Positions 50,845 to 59,349 of a stretch of DNA of 64,000 nucleotides are shown here, in pieces. Each line of letters begins with the position of its first letter. Within the stretch, counting starts at the first letter, position 1. The stretch is from assembly GCA_907165135.1 (NCBI GenBank), contig OU015568.1, forward strand, positions 7,626,001 to 7,690,000. The letters are read 5' to 3'. The notes below the pieces were generated by a model. That model ran no database searches and was not told the DNA's origin. It saw nothing but the letters and a program-made list of their open reading frames with translations. The translations under genes and the position numbers were made by a program. The stretch comes from Oikopleura dioica (taxonomy: Eukaryota > Animalia > Chordata).

Positions 50845-53800
50845 TTGGTCTTCAATAATTCGAATTTAGAAAAGATGTCGAACTCGTTAATTGACTTTTG
50901 CTCTTTGACTTCCCAATTAGAGCATTCTGTGGCCTCTCAAAAGTTCCAGAACTTACCCTCCCTTCTCGAAAACGACACCGATCTCGTTTACTTTCTCAGT
51001 TTTATTCCCCAGTTCCACAAAAATGTCCGCAAAGCCGCTTGGAAGAGCTGTCAAAAGAAGTTCAAATCATCGAATGGCGCTGAAATGATCGAAGAAGCTT
51101 TTAAAAATCAGAAAACAGAAGAACTGCGAAAGGATTTCTTGTATTTTATCAGCTCATACGGGGACCCGAAATGTCTTCTTGGGCTGGAAACCTTTTCCTG
51201 GCTGGTTAAAAGGACTGAAGAAGCGATTCAATCACTCGAAGATCTTCAAGATTTAGCCACATTGACGAAAATACTCAACTCTACGATAAAAGTCCTTTCA
51301 GAGAGTCAAATCGCTTCAGTCTCCACTCTCATCCCTTTCATGAAAAACGCCCTTCAGAAAACTGAATTTCATCTTCACATAGAACTCTGTGCATCCTGCG
51401 CTGTTACCATCGTTAATTTTGGGATTGTGAAACAATTTAGTCCCGACGAGTTTTTCGCCTTTTTGGAATTGGAAAAAGAAGACAATGATGTGGTTTATAA
51501 GTTGTTTATTGTTCGAGCTTTGGTTTCGTGTCTGCCGGAAGAATCGCTGCTCATGGACTTTGAGAGCTGGAGAATTTGCGACTTTTTGATTGCGACGATG
51601 ATTGACATTAGGTGAGCTTTATCAATTGATATGCGATCGATCGATTCAGTACAGTTTTTCAGATATAGTTTCATTTCAAATAATAACGTGATAGGAAAAC
51701 TACATTTCTCTTATTGGTCACGAGGTCATATCTAGTACGGTTTAGAAGTCTACAGATGTAACGGGCCATCCTAAAACAAACAGTTTTTTTGCTTGAGACT
51801 CATTTTAATGTTTTGATTGATTTTTATATTTTCTGCCCTTATACTCGCTTTGGCCATCCATCGGCTGCATATGTCCTCTTTTAGGCCACCTGCTACGGAG
51901 CTATTGCCTCCAATTTCGATTCTTATCAGCTTCCAGGAATGAACCAAACCTCTTACTCTTATCTTTTTAGCTTGAAAACTACCCTTCAACCAACCCAAAT
52001 CTGCTACGCTGTCCGAGGCCTCACCGAGTCTGTCGAATTCTTCCAGCGCAAGAAAATCTCTCTTTCAGAAGAAATTTTCTCCCTTCTCCAAAAAAGCGGG
52101 ATCTTGACGAAGATGAGCGAGCATCCTCTCGACGTCGTCCGTGTCAACTCTTGGAAATTAATCAAAATCGTTGCGCAACATAAACTTTCAACTACAACGG
52201 AAGATTTGATTAGACTTGAGGTTATAACAATCATCAATAATGGTTTCTCGACGAGAAGCGAAACAATCTGGCTAACGAATTTGATGGACCCAGTCATTTT
52301 GGAATCTAATATTTTGCGAATCGCGAAAATCGTCGAAAAAGCACTTGAAAACGGAAAAGAACAGTCGATGGCTCCTCTATCCGGCGCTCTTCTTGGAAAA
52401 TGCTTCGAAGTTTGTCCAGAAACAACTCTCTTTTCAATCATGTGCCGCTTCCCGATCATTTGCGACAAGTACGACCCAAACGCGAGGAGGCTCTTTTTCG
52501 AAGTGATTCTGCCGAAAATGCTGGCGACGAAAAAAGTCGGCGAGGCTTTCCTTTCCCATTGCAAGAACTTCAAATCGCCAGAAACGACTCAATTGATCAT
52601 TTCAATTTTGAAGCTCCAAAAGACCTCTTTCTCCGATGGACTGATTTCGACTGATGATTTGAAACAACTTCTTTTCTCGAAATCCATTGATTCCCGACTC
52701 AACACTCTTGGCTACATAACGACCTCCTGGAAAACAGCGATGCCCTTTTCAACCCTTTCGTTGGATCTCATCAGAACATCTATTTCTTGCAATTTGAATC
52801 TCCAGCGACCTTCGCACCGCCAGCTTTTGAATTCCATCCTTTCTCGAGTCTTTTCTCGTTTCGACGCTAGTTTCGTTTACTCAAAGTCTCAGGAAGATTA
52901 TTTAAAATTCATCGAATTCATCGTCAATCTGTCTTTGAATGAGCTCGTTCCTGGCGCTTCTATGGCTCGTAATAGTCTTATTTTGACTTACTTGAACTAC
53001 GTAATGGATTTACGCAACGATTCTCTACGAAAACACGTGATCAAAGTCATTTCAAAACTGACCGATATTCTTTTTGAACGACTCAAGTCCCTCCTCTTCA
53101 ATTCCTTCCAAGAAGTCGCCAAGAACGCCCAGCAAACGCTCCTCAAACTTTCCAATCTTTGCAAATTTACCCCGTCTTCCCAAGTCAAAAGTATAGAACT
53201 GTTGAGGAAGAGCAAGAGTCTCAGCGATTCCAGCGGTCTCGTCTACTTACTTATCTTTGATCTGGAATCGGAGGCGCGGCGAGAAAAGATTCCGATTGAA
53301 AAGCTCGCCGGAAACTTTGTCCTCGAGATATGTGAGAAGCTAGACGAAGACTTAGGGAACGCTGATCTGGCTTCCTGTGCGACGAGTAAGCCTCACTATG
53401 GACTGCTTGCGGGGCTTGAGGCTCTTCTCCCTTACTTGAAAAACGCCCATTCCTCTATGAAAGAAATTCTCGCCCAAAAGTTGCTAAATATCTGCGCGAA
53501 AGCAAACGATTTCGCCATCCCAGTCGTCAACGCTTCTTCTCCCGAAGGCTTTCTTCCTGAGTCCGACATTTCCAAAGACTTTGAGTCGCTCAAACTCGAT
53601 GGACGAAGAATCGGCTCTGACTCTACTGAACTCGCGCAATTATTGCTCGTCATGTGCTGGAGAATCACGAAGTCAGTTTCGATGCTGATGGGATCGATGT
53701 GCGCGGTACTGAGTGCGCAAATCGAGTGCTATGAGAAATGTGCGGCTTATTTTGTGACGCAGTTAACCAAAGGAAGACACAGGTGAATATTCCTTTCAAT

Positions 53801-55568
53801 CATAGAAGACGTAGATAGATAATTAAAATTTGCAGAGGGGCATTTGAGCTGGCTGCCACAGGATTCACCGAGCTATGCCAAGAAGTCCGTAAGCAAAAAG
53901 ACCCGCGTTTCTCGAAGCTTCTTGATAAATGGCTTGACGATTGTCTGGCTATCTTGAAGGATGAGGAAAAGGTGAAACGTTTATGCAATACGCGTCGTTC
54001 TGCGGGTCTGCCATTTATGTTTGTCGCCATTTGTTCAGCAGACGTCGGGACGAGATCGAAGCCATTGCTAATTAGGACACTGGCGGAAATTTTCCCCCTG
54101 GCCGAGGATCTGTCCGACGAAGAAGTCGCCTGCCATGCTAGGAATATTCTAAGGTACTCTCTTTTTCCATTGAAATCGTAATTTATTCAATTTTGAACTT
54201 TAGAGCTTTATTTCGCGAGTCAAACTTCGGCGAAGACGTCCTCCAATACGCTGAAAAAGCGATGGTCATGTCGATCGCTGGATTCGCTGATAAGACCTGG
54301 GCGCTGAGGAATACCAGTGCGATGATGTACTCGACTCTGAGTTCGAGAATATTTGGAGTTAAGAAGACGGATGATGAGCAAAAAATCTCATCGTCAGAGT
54401 TTTTCTCGAGATTTCCAGTGCTGCAGAAGGCCTTGTTAGAGAATTTAGGAACGGCTAATAATCATTCTTCGACAGAACGATGAATGCTTATCGTTTCACG
54501 CGGAAAATTGTCTTCATCAAATTATTCAGAAAAAAAGCCTCAGAAAAGAGAGCGCTGCGAAGAAGGTCAACAGCCCTTCCCTTCCTCCAACGCTTTTACC
54601 GTCGCTTATCATCATTCAACGGCTTTTTCCAACAAGCACTGGGTCGACAGAGATCAACTTTATCCCCAGTCTGATTCTCCTCTCTGGAACAAAAGTCTGG
54701 AAAGGCAGGCAAATCGCCGCGCGCTGCTTTGCTTCACTCAATAATCGACCACTATCTACTTTTGAAAAAGAATTCATGGAAATTTTGGGATCGCAGAACG
54801 AAAATAGAATTCATGGACTTCTTTTGCTGATAACAAGTGATAAGGAGTCGTTGAATACGCTTTCTCCTTGTGTCTTAAGGTCTTGGTCGTAAATTTTTGT
54901 CTATTTATTTGGACATTTGAAACTGGGCTCGGGATTCTGTGCAGAAACCCGAGTCAGGGTCCCCTGTAAGTTACAGGGCCTGTAACACCATTACGAAGCG
55001 ACTTCGCCAAAATTACTCTTATCATAAGAGTCTTATGCTCTTTCGGGTATCTGACTCAGGCTTCAACACAGGTTGAAATGCCCAGTTTATGATCGTCCAA
55101 ACAAATCGATTCAAGACTATAAATTTATGATCATCTGAAACAGTGGAATCATGGAGAAAGCCTCTCAATTTTCCATCGCTAGTCAGTCGCTAATCATAAA
55201 GCTAGCGACGATGCTGCCGAAGGAAGAGAATATCGTCACACTGGCGGAATCGATTATCCTCTCAAAGTCTAAAAACGTAGACATGGCGGAACTGGAGTTT
55301 TATGAAAATGCGTCGCGATTTTCTGTCGAAAACGATTCGGATCATTTGATGGAGCATTTACTGAAACGGGGTGGAAATGCTGCGAGAGCACTTGTGTCTG
55401 ATGAGGGCTTTCAACAACGGAAATTATGGAAAGAAGAGGCGATATTAGACGAGTTGGTGGAATTGCTGATTAAATCTGATTGCGATGAGACGAAAATAGG
55501 GGTGGCAAAGGTGTTGGCGTCTGGGAAAGTCGAGGATGAGAAAAGAAGGGAGATGCTAAAGGGCCTTG
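50845..55568 (+). CDS. THADA: THADA / Trm732 (DUF2428) main body
   Basis: SSPEGFLP, LLVMCWR, RH/RGAFELAATGF, TRRSAGLPF, CHARNILR/ALFRES, WALRNTSAMMYSTLSSRIFG, FFSRFP. Confidence 0.92.
54923..55085. mobile_element. Diverged CTGGG-family MITE in THADA intron
   Basis: ctgggctcgggattctgtgcagaaacccgagtcaggg ... tgactcaggcttcaacacaggttgaaatgcccag. Confidence 0.75.
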
Positions 55569-55834
55569 GTAAGTACCAATTTCTATCGTCAATTTTTGTC
55601 TGGCAGACACACCCTGGGCGTAAAAAAATCGCAGCGTGAAATGAATGTTCACTTTTTGTCGAATCAAAGAGCGCAAACTCAGTGCGGACCGAACCAATCG
55701 CCGCATCTTTTTTCATTATCGAGGTCAAGATCAATCTTCTCCCGTTCGCGGGCTTTTTTTTACTCGTGCCTTCCAATTTTAATTGCCGATATTTGAAGAG
55801 ATTTCTGAGGAATGAAATTTTGAAAAAAAAGAAG

Positions 55835-58432
55835 ATGCCACGTAGAGATTCGAATAAGAATGAAGCCTTGAAAACATCTCCCAAAGAGAAAAAAAGACAT
55901 AAGGTAAAGCTTATTGTCGTTTTTTTCTCCGCTAATTTGTTTTTAGTGCGTTGAATGTGGAGCTTCTTTGTCATCAAAATCTCACCTAGATAGACACTTG
56001 ATGATTCATAGGGATGAAAGACCATTTCCTTGTGACACATGTGGATTTGCTTTTCGATTTAGATCCGATCTCAAACGTCATCAACTTCATTCTTGTCAGA
56101 AAAATTGGAAATGTCTGATTTGCGGGGAGGAATTTCGGAACAAGCATCTCTTACACTGTCACATCAAAAAATGTGGAAATGATGATGGGAAAGAACCTGA
56201 AAAACAGATAAAAAGAAAGAAGAAACTACCCGAAGATCAAGAATATTCTTATGACGACGACGGAAAAACAATTTGCTCTATCTGCGACGAGAAAATTCAC
56301 CCGAATAGTATCCATAGACATATTCGTGACGTGCACAAGAAGAAAAGGGCGTTTAAAGTCTCTATACCCAGATTAAGTCCTTGATTCTAGCTTTTCTTTT
56401 AGTGCGATAACTGTGGAAACTTTTTTCGTCGTGAAGATCAACTGGAGAATCACAAACTTCGCTGCAAAGAAGATTCCGAGGAAGAAGTGGATGAATTTGA
56501 GCCAGAAGAGCTAGAGCCAGATGAGTTAGTTGCAGAAGAACCGCTGGAGGATCTGGAAGCAAACGACGAAGTTGAATGTGAATATTGCGAGAAAACTTTC
56601 GATACTATGATGAATCTCAGGAGACATATTTCTAAAGCTCATCCCAACAAAAAGCATTACAAGGTAGAACATGTTTTCCTCATAAAATTGTGTCATTATG
56701 ATGATTTTAGTGTGAAAAGGGCGGAGTAGCATTCAAAAGATTCCGCGAGCTTAGGGATCATGAAAACGGATGTGCGCGTGTTGAAGAAGAAGAAGAAGAC
56801 GAAGAAAAGGAAGGATCTGGGGAAGAGTCTGACGACGAGAGCGAAGAATCGGACGTTCCGAGTAATTTTAAGCCAGCCCATCTGAAGGAGAAGCCTTTCA
56901 CGGTAAATTTTAATGAAAAATAAGTATAAAGAAGCTATATTTTGTTTTAGTGCGACGATTGTGGAAAACGGTTCAGAACAAAAAGCAACTTATCGCAACA
57001 TGAAATGGTCCATAAAGACGTCTATCCCTTTAGCTGTGAAAAATGTGGATCAAGGTTCAAATGGCAAGCTGGACTCTCTCGGCATAGAAAAAAACAGAAA
57101 GAAAAATGTAAACTTCTTCAGATGAATCAAAAATCCAACGATGAACACGAAGAACCAAAAGTCGAAGAAGTTACTATTGAAGAGGTGTCTGATGACGATT
57201 TCCAGGATTTTGAGGAATTGAACGGCAAAGAAGAATCTATTGATGAATATGAAGAAGAGATCGCCCCCTCAAATTTGAAAAAGAGAAAAAGATCAACTTC
57301 TAAATCAAAGAGCAAGACTTATAAGGTAACTTACCTATCTAAGTATGGAATACCTTTAATTGAATGCAAAAATTTATACTTTGTTTAAGTGTGATGAATG
57401 TGGACAACAGTTCCGATCAAGAAATGGTTGGAAGGATCACCAAAAGCTTCACAGTGAAGTCTTTGAATATTCTTGTGAGGAGTGCGGGTTGCAATTCAAG
57501 CTGCGTCAGACGCTTAATTCTCATAAGCGAAGATGCCATCCGCATAAAAACAGCGAGATAAACATCGTGGAAATAACAATTGAAGAAGACTCTTATGAAA
57601 TTGAGATTTCTACGGAGGAAGAAAAATCTTTCGCCGAATCTAAAGGCTCTTCCACTACTTCGAAACGCAGAGAAAAGAAAGATTCTTACAAGGTAGGGAT
57701 AAATAACGATATGAAAAAGATCTATTATAATTTATTATAGTGCGATGAATGTGGAAAAGAATTCAAGTGGCATTGCGAGCTCAAAAATCACCGAAAAATT
57801 CACGGAAATGTTTATTCTTACCGCTGCGAAAAATGCGGATCGAAATTCAAGCAGCCACAGGGCCTTTACGGCCATAGAAAGAACCAAAAAGAACTCTGCA
57901 ATTTTCTTACAATTGACTTCACTTCGATACCTAAAGACGATGAAAATGAGGAAATAAAACTTGAGGAAATGACAATCGAAGAGGTGCTGGAAGATAAGTT
58001 CAATGAATTAGAGCTGGAAGAATCAACAGTTTCAAATCAGTCGAAAGAAAAAGTATCTGGCGTCAACGAAGATGATTCTTTCAAAGTTCCCAAATCACCG
58101 AAGATCCCTACGTTGATGTAAGCTTCAAGACTCAAATTTCATTTATTTAACTTTGACCTAGAATACCTAAAGAAGATCTCAAACGACCAAAGAAAGTCTC
58201 CAAGCAGAAAACACTGATGCGAAAGCGCAAGCACTTGAAAATCAAAGCTCGACGGATCATCAACCGAGTAATGCACTACCACGTCAACGAGGAAGACGAG
58301 GACGGAAGTGTGACGCCAAGATGGCTGCCCATTTTCGAAGTGAAAGACTTCAACGATGTGATTGAATTCGAAAAGTTCATGGATAAAGTAGAAAAGGGCT
58401 CGGAAGACGACCGATTCGTACCTCAAGAATAG
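55835..58432 (+). CDS. Multi-C2H2/C2HC zinc-finger protein with acidic linkers and a C-terminal chromo-like domain
   Basis: Repeated C-x2-C...H-x3-(H/C) fingers over several exons; last exon ...KIKARRIINRVMHYHVNEEDEDGSVTPRWLPIFEV.... 5' end approximate. Confidence 0.85.
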
Positions 58433-58607
58433 ACACCAGAACAACTTCACTGCCTATTATTTAACTTTAACACGGATACAATTTATTGAAAAATAAACTC
58501 ACAACAAAAATAATATATCAAGATTCTTCTTTTATCATGGCCCCGGGTTCGCGCGATCTTTCTGTCTGCCAGACAAATACTGCCAGTAAAGTTCAAAATC
58601 TCTTTAG

Positions 58608-59349
58608 CGAAAGAAATCAGAACGGACCTCGTCCAGAACGCAGAGCTCACTGGGCTCATCCTAGAACTCCTCCTGGAAATTGGCGAAGAGGAAGAAGTGT
58701 CAAAGCATCTAAGCGAAGCTTCAAAGCCTCATCAACATTGGATCCTCCGTCGAAGCGCGGCGATATGCTGTACCAAGCTCATGTTTGAGCGGGAAAAGAA
58801 AACAGTGCCATCCCAAGTGTCTGAGTGTCTACTCAGATGTTGGGTAGATGAGGATGGAGATGTGCGCGAACCAATTGTAGAGCGACTGGGAGACATTCCA
58901 TTTATTGATGGCAAGTCTCCGTTTATGGACTTTTGGCATGAGAAGGCGGAACAAGGAAATGCGCTGGAAATATTGATTCGAATCGGGTTCAAGAATGAGA
59001 GCGAAGCCTTCAGCTTGTTTCAAGAGGTAGGAGTTTAGCCCTGAAGCCACATCTTTATTTATATTTTCAGCGAGCTACTGCATTTGACGTCGTTAATCTG
59101 AATCAAAACTTCGAACCAGTTCTGATGACTCGTCTTGCTCTCTATGGAATCAAGAAACTAGCAGATACGGTAAGACCATCCTAGTATGAACTCCTTTATA
59201 ATTTAATTTAGGATGATATGGAAAAATTACGAACGATATCAAGAAGCCTGACTAAACTACTGAAAGAGATATCGCACGAAAACGAAAAGCCAACGGAAGT
59301 GACAAAGCTACAGTACAGATTACTGTCAGATTTTATCGCTGAACTCTAA
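58608..59349 (+). CDS. HEAT-like exons resembling the THADA C-terminus
   Basis: LSEASKPHQHWILRRSAA...SECLLRCWVDEDGDVREPIV...FSLFQE; three exons ending DFIAEL*. No in-frame upstream ATG without splicing. Confidence 0.6.

Follow-up and report, generated by a model that had tools for sequence, protein, structure and literature searches.

A zinc-finger gene lodged within a once-short intron of a THADA gene that probably remains whole in Oikopleura dioica

Genes nested in introns have been listed among the features of compact genomes, that of Oikopleura dioica included (bioRxiv 10.64898/2025.12.04.692336). We analyzed a 64,000-nt stretch of the genome of this larvacean (contig OU015568.1 of assembly GCA_907165135.1, positions 7,626,001 to 7,690,000 of the forward strand), hereafter the window, in which a complete C2H2 zinc-finger (ZF) gene separates the exons encoding the body of the THADA/Trm732 protein from the exons encoding its C-terminal tail. 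THADA/Trm732 is a cofactor of the tRNA 2'-O-methyltransferase FTSJ1/Trm7. As in other cases of intron-nested genes, the lodger is complete, having a start, a stop, introns, and a poly(A) signal of its own, and is contained in one host intron; both genes are under purifying selection. The locus differs from intron-nested genes in general in that host and lodger are on the same strand and in that the host intron was demonstrably ~43 nt long before the insertion. Of the two orientations, nesting on the same strand is less common and more awkward, since it places the poly(A) site of the lodger on the host pre-mRNA. A previous reading of this DNA, made from the sequence alone (hereafter the sequence-only reading), had considered the arrangement to be unusual; in view of the listing cited above and of further same-strand cases in this genome described below, this was overstated.

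The relocation of genes has also been described. Between the cryptic species of O. dioica, scrambling of the genome relocates short functional regions and genes can switch operons (Plessy et al. 2024, PMC11067885), the breakpoints being least frequent inside genes (PMC11067885). The THADA/ZF locus shares with this process a gene-sized segment that changes position between lineages with collinear flanks, and differs from it in that the segment came to lie within an intron of another gene, which was probably left unbroken. Intron nesting and gene relocation between Oikopleura lineages are both already documented; the particular value of this locus is that the pre- and post-insertion states are both present in living lineages.

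The ends of the THADA intron bear comparison with a third system. In budding yeast, 'zipper' stems within introns are said to shorten the distance between the 5' splice site and the branch point, as reportedly described by Goguel and Rosbash in 1993, Libri et al. in 1995, and Rogic et al. in 2008. The helix predicted to join the ends of the THADA intron resembles these stems in that complementary segments near the ends of a long intron would bring the reactive sites to the spacing preferred by the spliceosome. It differs from them in that the loop is a whole 2.6-kb same-strand gene, in that the host is a chordate with introns mostly shorter than 60 nt, in that no covariation is seen, and in that the function is a predicted one. 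No paper describing intron-bridging stems for gene-bearing introns in larvaceans was found.

Coordinates are positions in the window unless a contig is named, and all features of the locus are on the + strand. Lineage A is that of the window itself, lineage B has ~85% nucleotide identity with it, and lineage C is a sister lineage with ~70% nucleotide identity. Searches with the window were made exon by exon, and natural cDNA contigs of relatives were used where a continuous sequence was needed. The genome, of 64.3 Mb in 19 contigs, has introns that are mostly ~40-55 nt long, and its close relatives among marine metagenome sequences are larvacean-like. The locus comprises the following features.

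50875..55568, + strand: body of THADA/Trm732, identified by Pfam, by the match to 8y2o_A, and by a collinear tblastn map of the open reading frame (ORF) of a lineage C cDNA; exons approximately 50875-51611, 51971-53782, 53836-54153, ~54193-54456, ~54544-54879, and 55144-55568, the middle boundaries being approximate.
55569..58607, + strand: THADA intron, GT-AG, phase 1, 3039 nt, with donor G/GTAAGT and acceptor TTTAG/CG (AG at 58606-07).
55595..55609, + strand: left arm of the intron-end helix, TTTGTCTGGCAGACA, from the top inverted repeat of the region.
55625..55750, + strand: non-coding block of 126 nt with CCAAT at 55694-98, defined by conservation in lineage B contig L027.
55835..58432, + strand: nested C2H2 ZF gene, identified by Pfam, with 8 exons separated by short GT-AG introns; exons 55835-55903, 55947-56357, 56403-56663, 56711-56902, 56951-57325, 57390-57692, 57741-58117, and 58162-58432 (stop included).
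58492..58497, + strand: poly(A) signal (AATAAA) belonging to the ZF gene, located within the THADA intron and conserved in lineage B contigs L021 and L022.
58563..58577, + strand: right arm of the intron-end helix, TGTCTGCCAGACAAA, which reaches 58582 when extended.
58608..59349, + strand: C-terminal tail of THADA, with exons 58608-59026, 59071-59169, and 59212-59346 and a stop codon at 59347-49.

The last exon of the body ends with ...EMLKGL and one G at 55568, followed by the donor GTAAGT (GT at 55569-70), and this G forms an in-frame alanine codon with the CG at 58608-9. The ZF gene lies wholly between this donor and this acceptor of the host, with its own start (ATG, 55835-37), stop (TAG, 58430-32), and 3'-end signal. 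A further AATAAA is found at 59355-60, just past the stop codon of the tail. The boundaries proposed in the sequence-only reading for the end of the body, the ZF gene, and the tail were all recovered when the sequence was read again. The arrangement was seen independently in metagenome contigs of lineage B. In contig L027, the last body exon is followed by an identical donor, CTTG/GTAAGTACC, and then by the ATG of the ZF gene; L021 and L022 contain, in this order, the ZF stop, its AATAAA, TTTAG/CC, and the tail; and ZF exons 2-3 are present in L028 and L029. Because these independent contigs contain both insertion junctions, an assembly artefact is excluded.

The body was assigned to THADA by Pfam searches with its exon ORFs, which identified DUF2428 (E = 2e-15 and 2e-11), TPR_Trm732 (7e-12), and TPR_Trm732_C (4e-14), and by its sole specific match in the PDB, human THADA (8y2o_A). 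The tail alone gave only weak HEAT matches in Pfam and the PDB, and its assignment came from relatives. In lineage C, a 3.9-kb spliced cDNA contig (L023) contains one ORF of 1104 amino acids (aa) that combines DUF2428 (4e-55), TPR_Trm732_C (2e-29), and the tail; this ORF matches human THADA at 1e-56, with an alignment to 8y2o_A that ends at residue 1399 of 1981. The tail of the window is 79-80% identical to the tail of the lineage C THADA cDNA. A HMMER scan of 1.84 billion representative proteins returned tail-only ORFs that were 73-79% identical to the tail, together with P0007 and P0008 from more distant organisms, in which the motif CDETRxG of the last body exon and the tail are held in one uninterrupted frame. 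The alignment to the latter proteins displays the tail motifs PHQH..LR, DEDxxVR, and ETAFELVNLN..EP. On Tara metagenome scaffolds, P0008 is located directly after an ORF containing DUF2428 and TPR_Trm732_C. In genomic contigs of a more distant relative (L012-L016), the body end and the tail form a single 398-aa ORF right after the DUF2428 ORF, with no intron at the corresponding point. Since the tail and DUF2428 share one ORF and one cDNA in relatives, these sequence comparisons indicate that the downstream exons are the C-terminus of larvacean THADA. The sequence-only reading had noted a resemblance of these exons to the THADA C-terminus. Membership in THADA was borne out by the ORFs and cDNAs of relatives, so that the refuting outcome named in that reading, a match to a different HEAT/ARM family and not to THADA, did not arise; the likeness to the canonical (human) C-terminus was not recovered, the searches by sequence, profile, and fold giving generic HEAT matches only.

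Comparison with other lineages, which the sequence-only reading had proposed as a check, yielded distinct states of the locus: the insertion is shared by lineage B, the intron is short and without a ZF gene in lineage C, and it does not exist in the distant relative mentioned above. In lineage C, genomic contigs L011, L024, and L025 have an intron of ~43 nt at the identical codon and in phase 1. The intron of L011 reads CTCG/GTGGGT...TTTTAG/CGGGTGAAATC, the DNA downstream is collinear with the window, and a poly(A)-tailed cDNA contig of the same lineage (L020) displays the spliced junction ...GATCTCG/CGGGCGAAATA. Between lineages A and B, the alanine codon at the junction differs synonymously (GCG in the window and GCC in lineage B), and the consensus and phase of both donor and acceptor are kept. 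Synonymous divergence (dS) between A and B was 0.46-0.48 for the ZF gene and 0.45 for the tail. The equality of these values indicates that the lodger was in place before the A/B split. By parsimony, a complete ZF gene would have entered, on the coding strand, a pre-existing phase-1 intron of ~43 nt, the last internal intron of THADA, in the common ancestor of lineages A and B. A word search for the ZF orthologue in the sister lineage, i.e. for the source locus, returned only the lineage A and B copies, on short contigs.

An additional observation concerns L020, which contains at 655-700 an extra in-frame stretch of ~30 nt (IILIIDIDDK..) that is absent from the lineage C genomic contigs and from the window. 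It may represent a variant allele or an assembly quirk.

We consider it likely, from these comparisons of sequences, that THADA is still a single gene that houses the ZF gene in an intron and that its full-length mRNA is obtained by splicing across the lodger. In lineage A, this mRNA would arise by cis-splicing that connects the 55569 donor with the 58607 acceptor. The tail exons are intact, and the ratio of non-synonymous to synonymous divergence (dN/dS) with respect to lineage B is 0.03-0.05. The 56 codons of the tail that precede its first in-frame methionine codon display 14-15 synonymous and 2 non-synonymous differences from lineage B (dN/dS of 0.03). Purifying selection on these codons indicates that they are translated, so that an upstream exon must supply the start. 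Thus, of the two models put forward in the sequence-only reading, the one that postulated a 3-kb intron with a same-strand nested gene is supported by the lineage C intron and cDNA, by the conserved splice sites, and by the dN/dS of the tail. THADA forms a closed hollow cylinder around tRNA (PMC12145424). Since the protein closes in this manner, we infer that loss of its 217 C-terminal residues would matter.

Several observations weigh against a single gene spliced across the lodger. Searches for lineage A or B transcripts with the tail and the last body exon, and one metagenome scan, returned for these lineages genomic contigs only, and the 55568/58608 junction is one that we infer. The THADA pre-mRNA carries the poly(A) signal of the ZF gene upstream of the right helix arm, and many transcripts could be cut short by it. 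Directly at the donor, a GT...CAG unit of 38 nt (55569-55606) could be spliced first and would then lead to a truncated protein. Finally, comparison of the tail with the C-terminus of human THADA by phmmer, by a search of the PDB with a 9-sequence profile, and by Foldseek with an AlphaFold model (predicted local distance difference test score of 74.6) gave generic HEAT/ARM matches only; the latter results are uninformative as a test and were not counted against the THADA identity of the tail.

The alternative that survives best, although we regard it as unlikely, is compatible with splicing across the lodger and proposes a dual output, the full-length THADA being accompanied by a C-terminally truncated form produced either through the 38-nt unit, which leads to LDTPWA and a stop, or by cleavage of the transcript at the poly(A) site of the ZF gene. 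In its favor, the consensus donor GTAAGT, a U-rich tract, and CAG are combined in the 38-nt unit, the length of which is typical of an intron. In lineage B, the CAG is kept at 46 nt and a stop is found 4 codons on; the AATAAA of the ZF gene is conserved and precedes the right helix arm. However, a stop within a few codons is expected of any non-coding frame, and the CAG is conserved as part of a helix arm and of a palindrome described below. Because it belongs to these elements, its conservation is silent on its use as an acceptor. The dN/dS of 0.03 in the tail, moreover, shows that the long form matters. If the dual output were real, the insertion would have created a new short isoform of THADA.

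Gene fission, the second model of the sequence-only reading, appears very improbable. According to this proposal, the body would end with LDTPWA and the tail would be a separate gene, starting either from MAP and a 40-nt intron or from a spliced-leader acceptor at 58607. The corresponding readings do exist in the window: removal of the 38-nt unit places a stop at 55621-23 after LDTPWA, and the ATG at 58537 followed by a 40-nt GT...AG unit gives MAP/VKFKISLAKE. A palindromic motif that is found elsewhere in promoter-like DNA is also present 31 nt upstream of the tail exon. Nonetheless, lineage B has TCG in place of the ATG at 58537 and an in-frame TAA in the extension corresponding to VKFK..., and strong purifying selection acts on the codons ahead of the first in-frame methionine. 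The spliced leader, which is 40 nt long, has no AUG (PMC6883708), and a transcript that began at 58608 would have its first AUG out of frame. Lineages A and B have both retained the consensus and the phase of the donor and the acceptor. Operon predictions in Oikopleura are based on intercistronic spacers of <=60 nt (PMC7986045). At this locus, the ATG of the ZF gene follows the end of the body by a spacer of ~210-265 nt, according to where this end is placed, and the tail exon follows the ZF stop by one of 175 nt. Fission is disfavoured because these spacers are well above the operon cut-off.

It is hardly credible that the tail is an unrelated HEAT-repeat gene, a set of decaying remnants, or a mis-assembled juxtaposition, as the generic HEAT matches that it alone gives in Pfam, PDB, and Foldseek might suggest, given that relatives have it in the same ORF and cDNA as DUF2428, that its three exons are intact with a dN/dS of 0.03-0.05, and that independent contigs of another lineage contain both insertion junctions.

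Returning to a THADA gene spliced across its lodger, the ends of the intron harbor the strongest inverted repeat of the region, which pairs 55590-55609 with 58563-58582, with 2 mismatches in the outward extension to 55590. A distance of 26 nt separates the perfect core of 15 bp (TTTGTCTGGCAGACA with TGTCTGCCAGACAAA) from the donor, and one of 30 nt separates it from the acceptor. When the two 60-nt ends of the intron were shuffled 2000 times, a helix of 15 bp was never obtained, the maximum being 10 bp. A fold predicted for the entire segment of 3.1 kb contains the helix in its minimum free energy structure, and the pairs have probabilities of 0.77-1.0. In lineage B, the left arm is identical and 13 of the 15 bases of the right arm are unchanged, which leaves a 14-bp helix. 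No comparable pairing of the ends was found in three gene-free introns of THADA (~90-360 nt). Formation of the helix would loop out the lodger and leave 26 + 30 = 56 unpaired nt between the splice sites, a length close to that of the ordinary introns of O. dioica. It would also bury within the duplex the cryptic CAG acceptor (55604-06) located 38 nt from the donor. A second helix beside the main one, CCCUGGG with CCCGGG, was considered and rejected as it is not conserved in lineage B.

The case for the helix is weakened by two observations. First, lineage B, the only other lineage compared, loses two pairs without compensation, and no compensatory change was seen. Second, both arms reproduce a palindrome, TGTCTGSCAGACA (55597-55609 and 58563-58575), which has 66 sites in the 64-Mb genome versus 2 for a reversed control, an excess of ~30-fold. 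The copies of TGTCTGSCAGACA occur in unrelated contexts and cluster in promoter-like, AT-rich upstream DNA. The palindrome resembles paired Smad 'CAGA' boxes and is probably a transcription-factor site. Because both arms copy a palindrome that is over-represented genome-wide, the arms may owe their conservation to the binding of a protein to the DNA, perhaps as regulatory elements of the ZF gene, and their complementarity would then be a by-product. We consider the odds that the predicted pairing contributes to splicing to be about even.

A cluster of the palindrome was also observed outside the window: three TGTCTGSCAGACA sites, one of them a variant, are present in ~130 bp of AT-rich DNA at L005 1390-1515, upstream of a probable gene start.

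Paired ends were found in other gene-bearing introns of the same genome. The intron of the beta-mannosidase gene (MANBA) that contains the same-strand ALG8 gene (L032 3456-5425; G000:C1:1249455-1251424) has a perfect helix of 13 bp, TGGCTCATGATTT with AAATCATGAGCCA, located 9 and 8 nt from the intron ends; none of 2000 shuffles reached 13 bp. At TOR with the glycine receptor gene, a complement of 9 bp was seen between the region of the donor and the beginning of the exon that follows. The latter two loci resemble THADA/ZF in having a complete gene on the coding strand of a 2-4-kb intron and a short helix joining the ends. The arm sequences are unrelated, and only those of THADA copy a genome-wide palindrome. 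The positions also differ, since distances of 26 and 30 nt separate the THADA helix from its canonical GT-AG sites, as against 8-9 nt between the MANBA helix and the ends of a GA-AG intron. Finally, THADA/ZF is, unlike MANBA/ALG8 and TOR, a locus whose pre-insertion intron, of 43 nt, is preserved in a sister lineage.

The exons of the lodger matched the Pfam families zf-C2H2, zf-H2C2_2, and zf-C2H2_4. Five of them (within 55947-58117) begin with TGYGAYGAATGTGGA, and each of these repeated exons encodes two or three C2H2 fingers and an acidic linker, most ending with ...Y-K/GT. The shared opening TGYGAYGAATGTGGA indicates that the ZF gene grew by tandem exon duplication. Its dN/dS with respect to lineage B is ~0.30, which reveals purifying selection that is weaker than that acting on the tail but real, and L030, an independent contig from a metagenome, carries a copy with 97-99% identity. 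The block 55625-55750, which precedes the ZF gene, is ~95% identical to L027, versus ~72% for the rest of the intron and an A/B dS of ~0.45; it is probably the gene's own promoter. A search of the intron for structured RNA or snoRNA returned no Rfam match at E<=1, the block 55625-55750 being without an Rfam family.

The last ZF exon encodes, at 58219-58422, a C-terminal module of ~65 residues, RWLPIFEVKDF..., that has no Pfam family. Paralogues of this module, with 58-63% amino-acid identity, were found at G000:C4:3763247-3763438 and G000:C2:2331568-2331754.

A transposon origin of the insert was considered and rejected. The insert, of 3 kb, shows no target-site duplication and is single-copy except for the domain of the last exon, which has two paralogues, and the flanks of the other copies of the palindromic motif are unrelated. 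With respect to cut-and-paste transposons, an inverted repeat is present but its two sites differ at the central base (G versus C). Lacking a target-site duplication and being single-copy, the insert is not a recognisable transposon.

Other introns of THADA also display unusual properties. Those at 54880-55143 (264 nt) and 51612-51970 (359 nt) are unusually long, and the former is ~190 nt longer than its counterpart in L027 of lineage B. The possibility that they result from transposon insertions was rejected, since neither is multi-copy and neither has paired ends. The intron at ~54454-54543 apparently has no GT donor; GC-AG is the likeliest arrangement, the boundary being taken unrefined from the cDNA-based protein map.

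The locus illustrates how a gene can enter a tiny intron of another gene, on the coding strand, with the host probably spared, and bears in this respect on the tolerance of Oikopleura for thousands of rearrangements. It also carries a warning for annotation, as THADA and similar hosts are liable to be miscalled as truncated or split genes in this genome. The predicted helix offers a concrete candidate for a mechanism, in which the geometry of a short intron would be restored and a cryptic acceptor hidden. Only tentatively do we extend this proposal to end-tying helices as a general, selected device that would let a spliceosome tuned to ~45-nt introns cross gene-sized insertions in the larvacean. 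If this were true, introns would be safe landing sites for genes relocated in the extreme scrambling of Oikopleura, and THADA/ZF would be a case in which the states before (a 43-nt intron) and after (3039 nt and a helix) have both survived.

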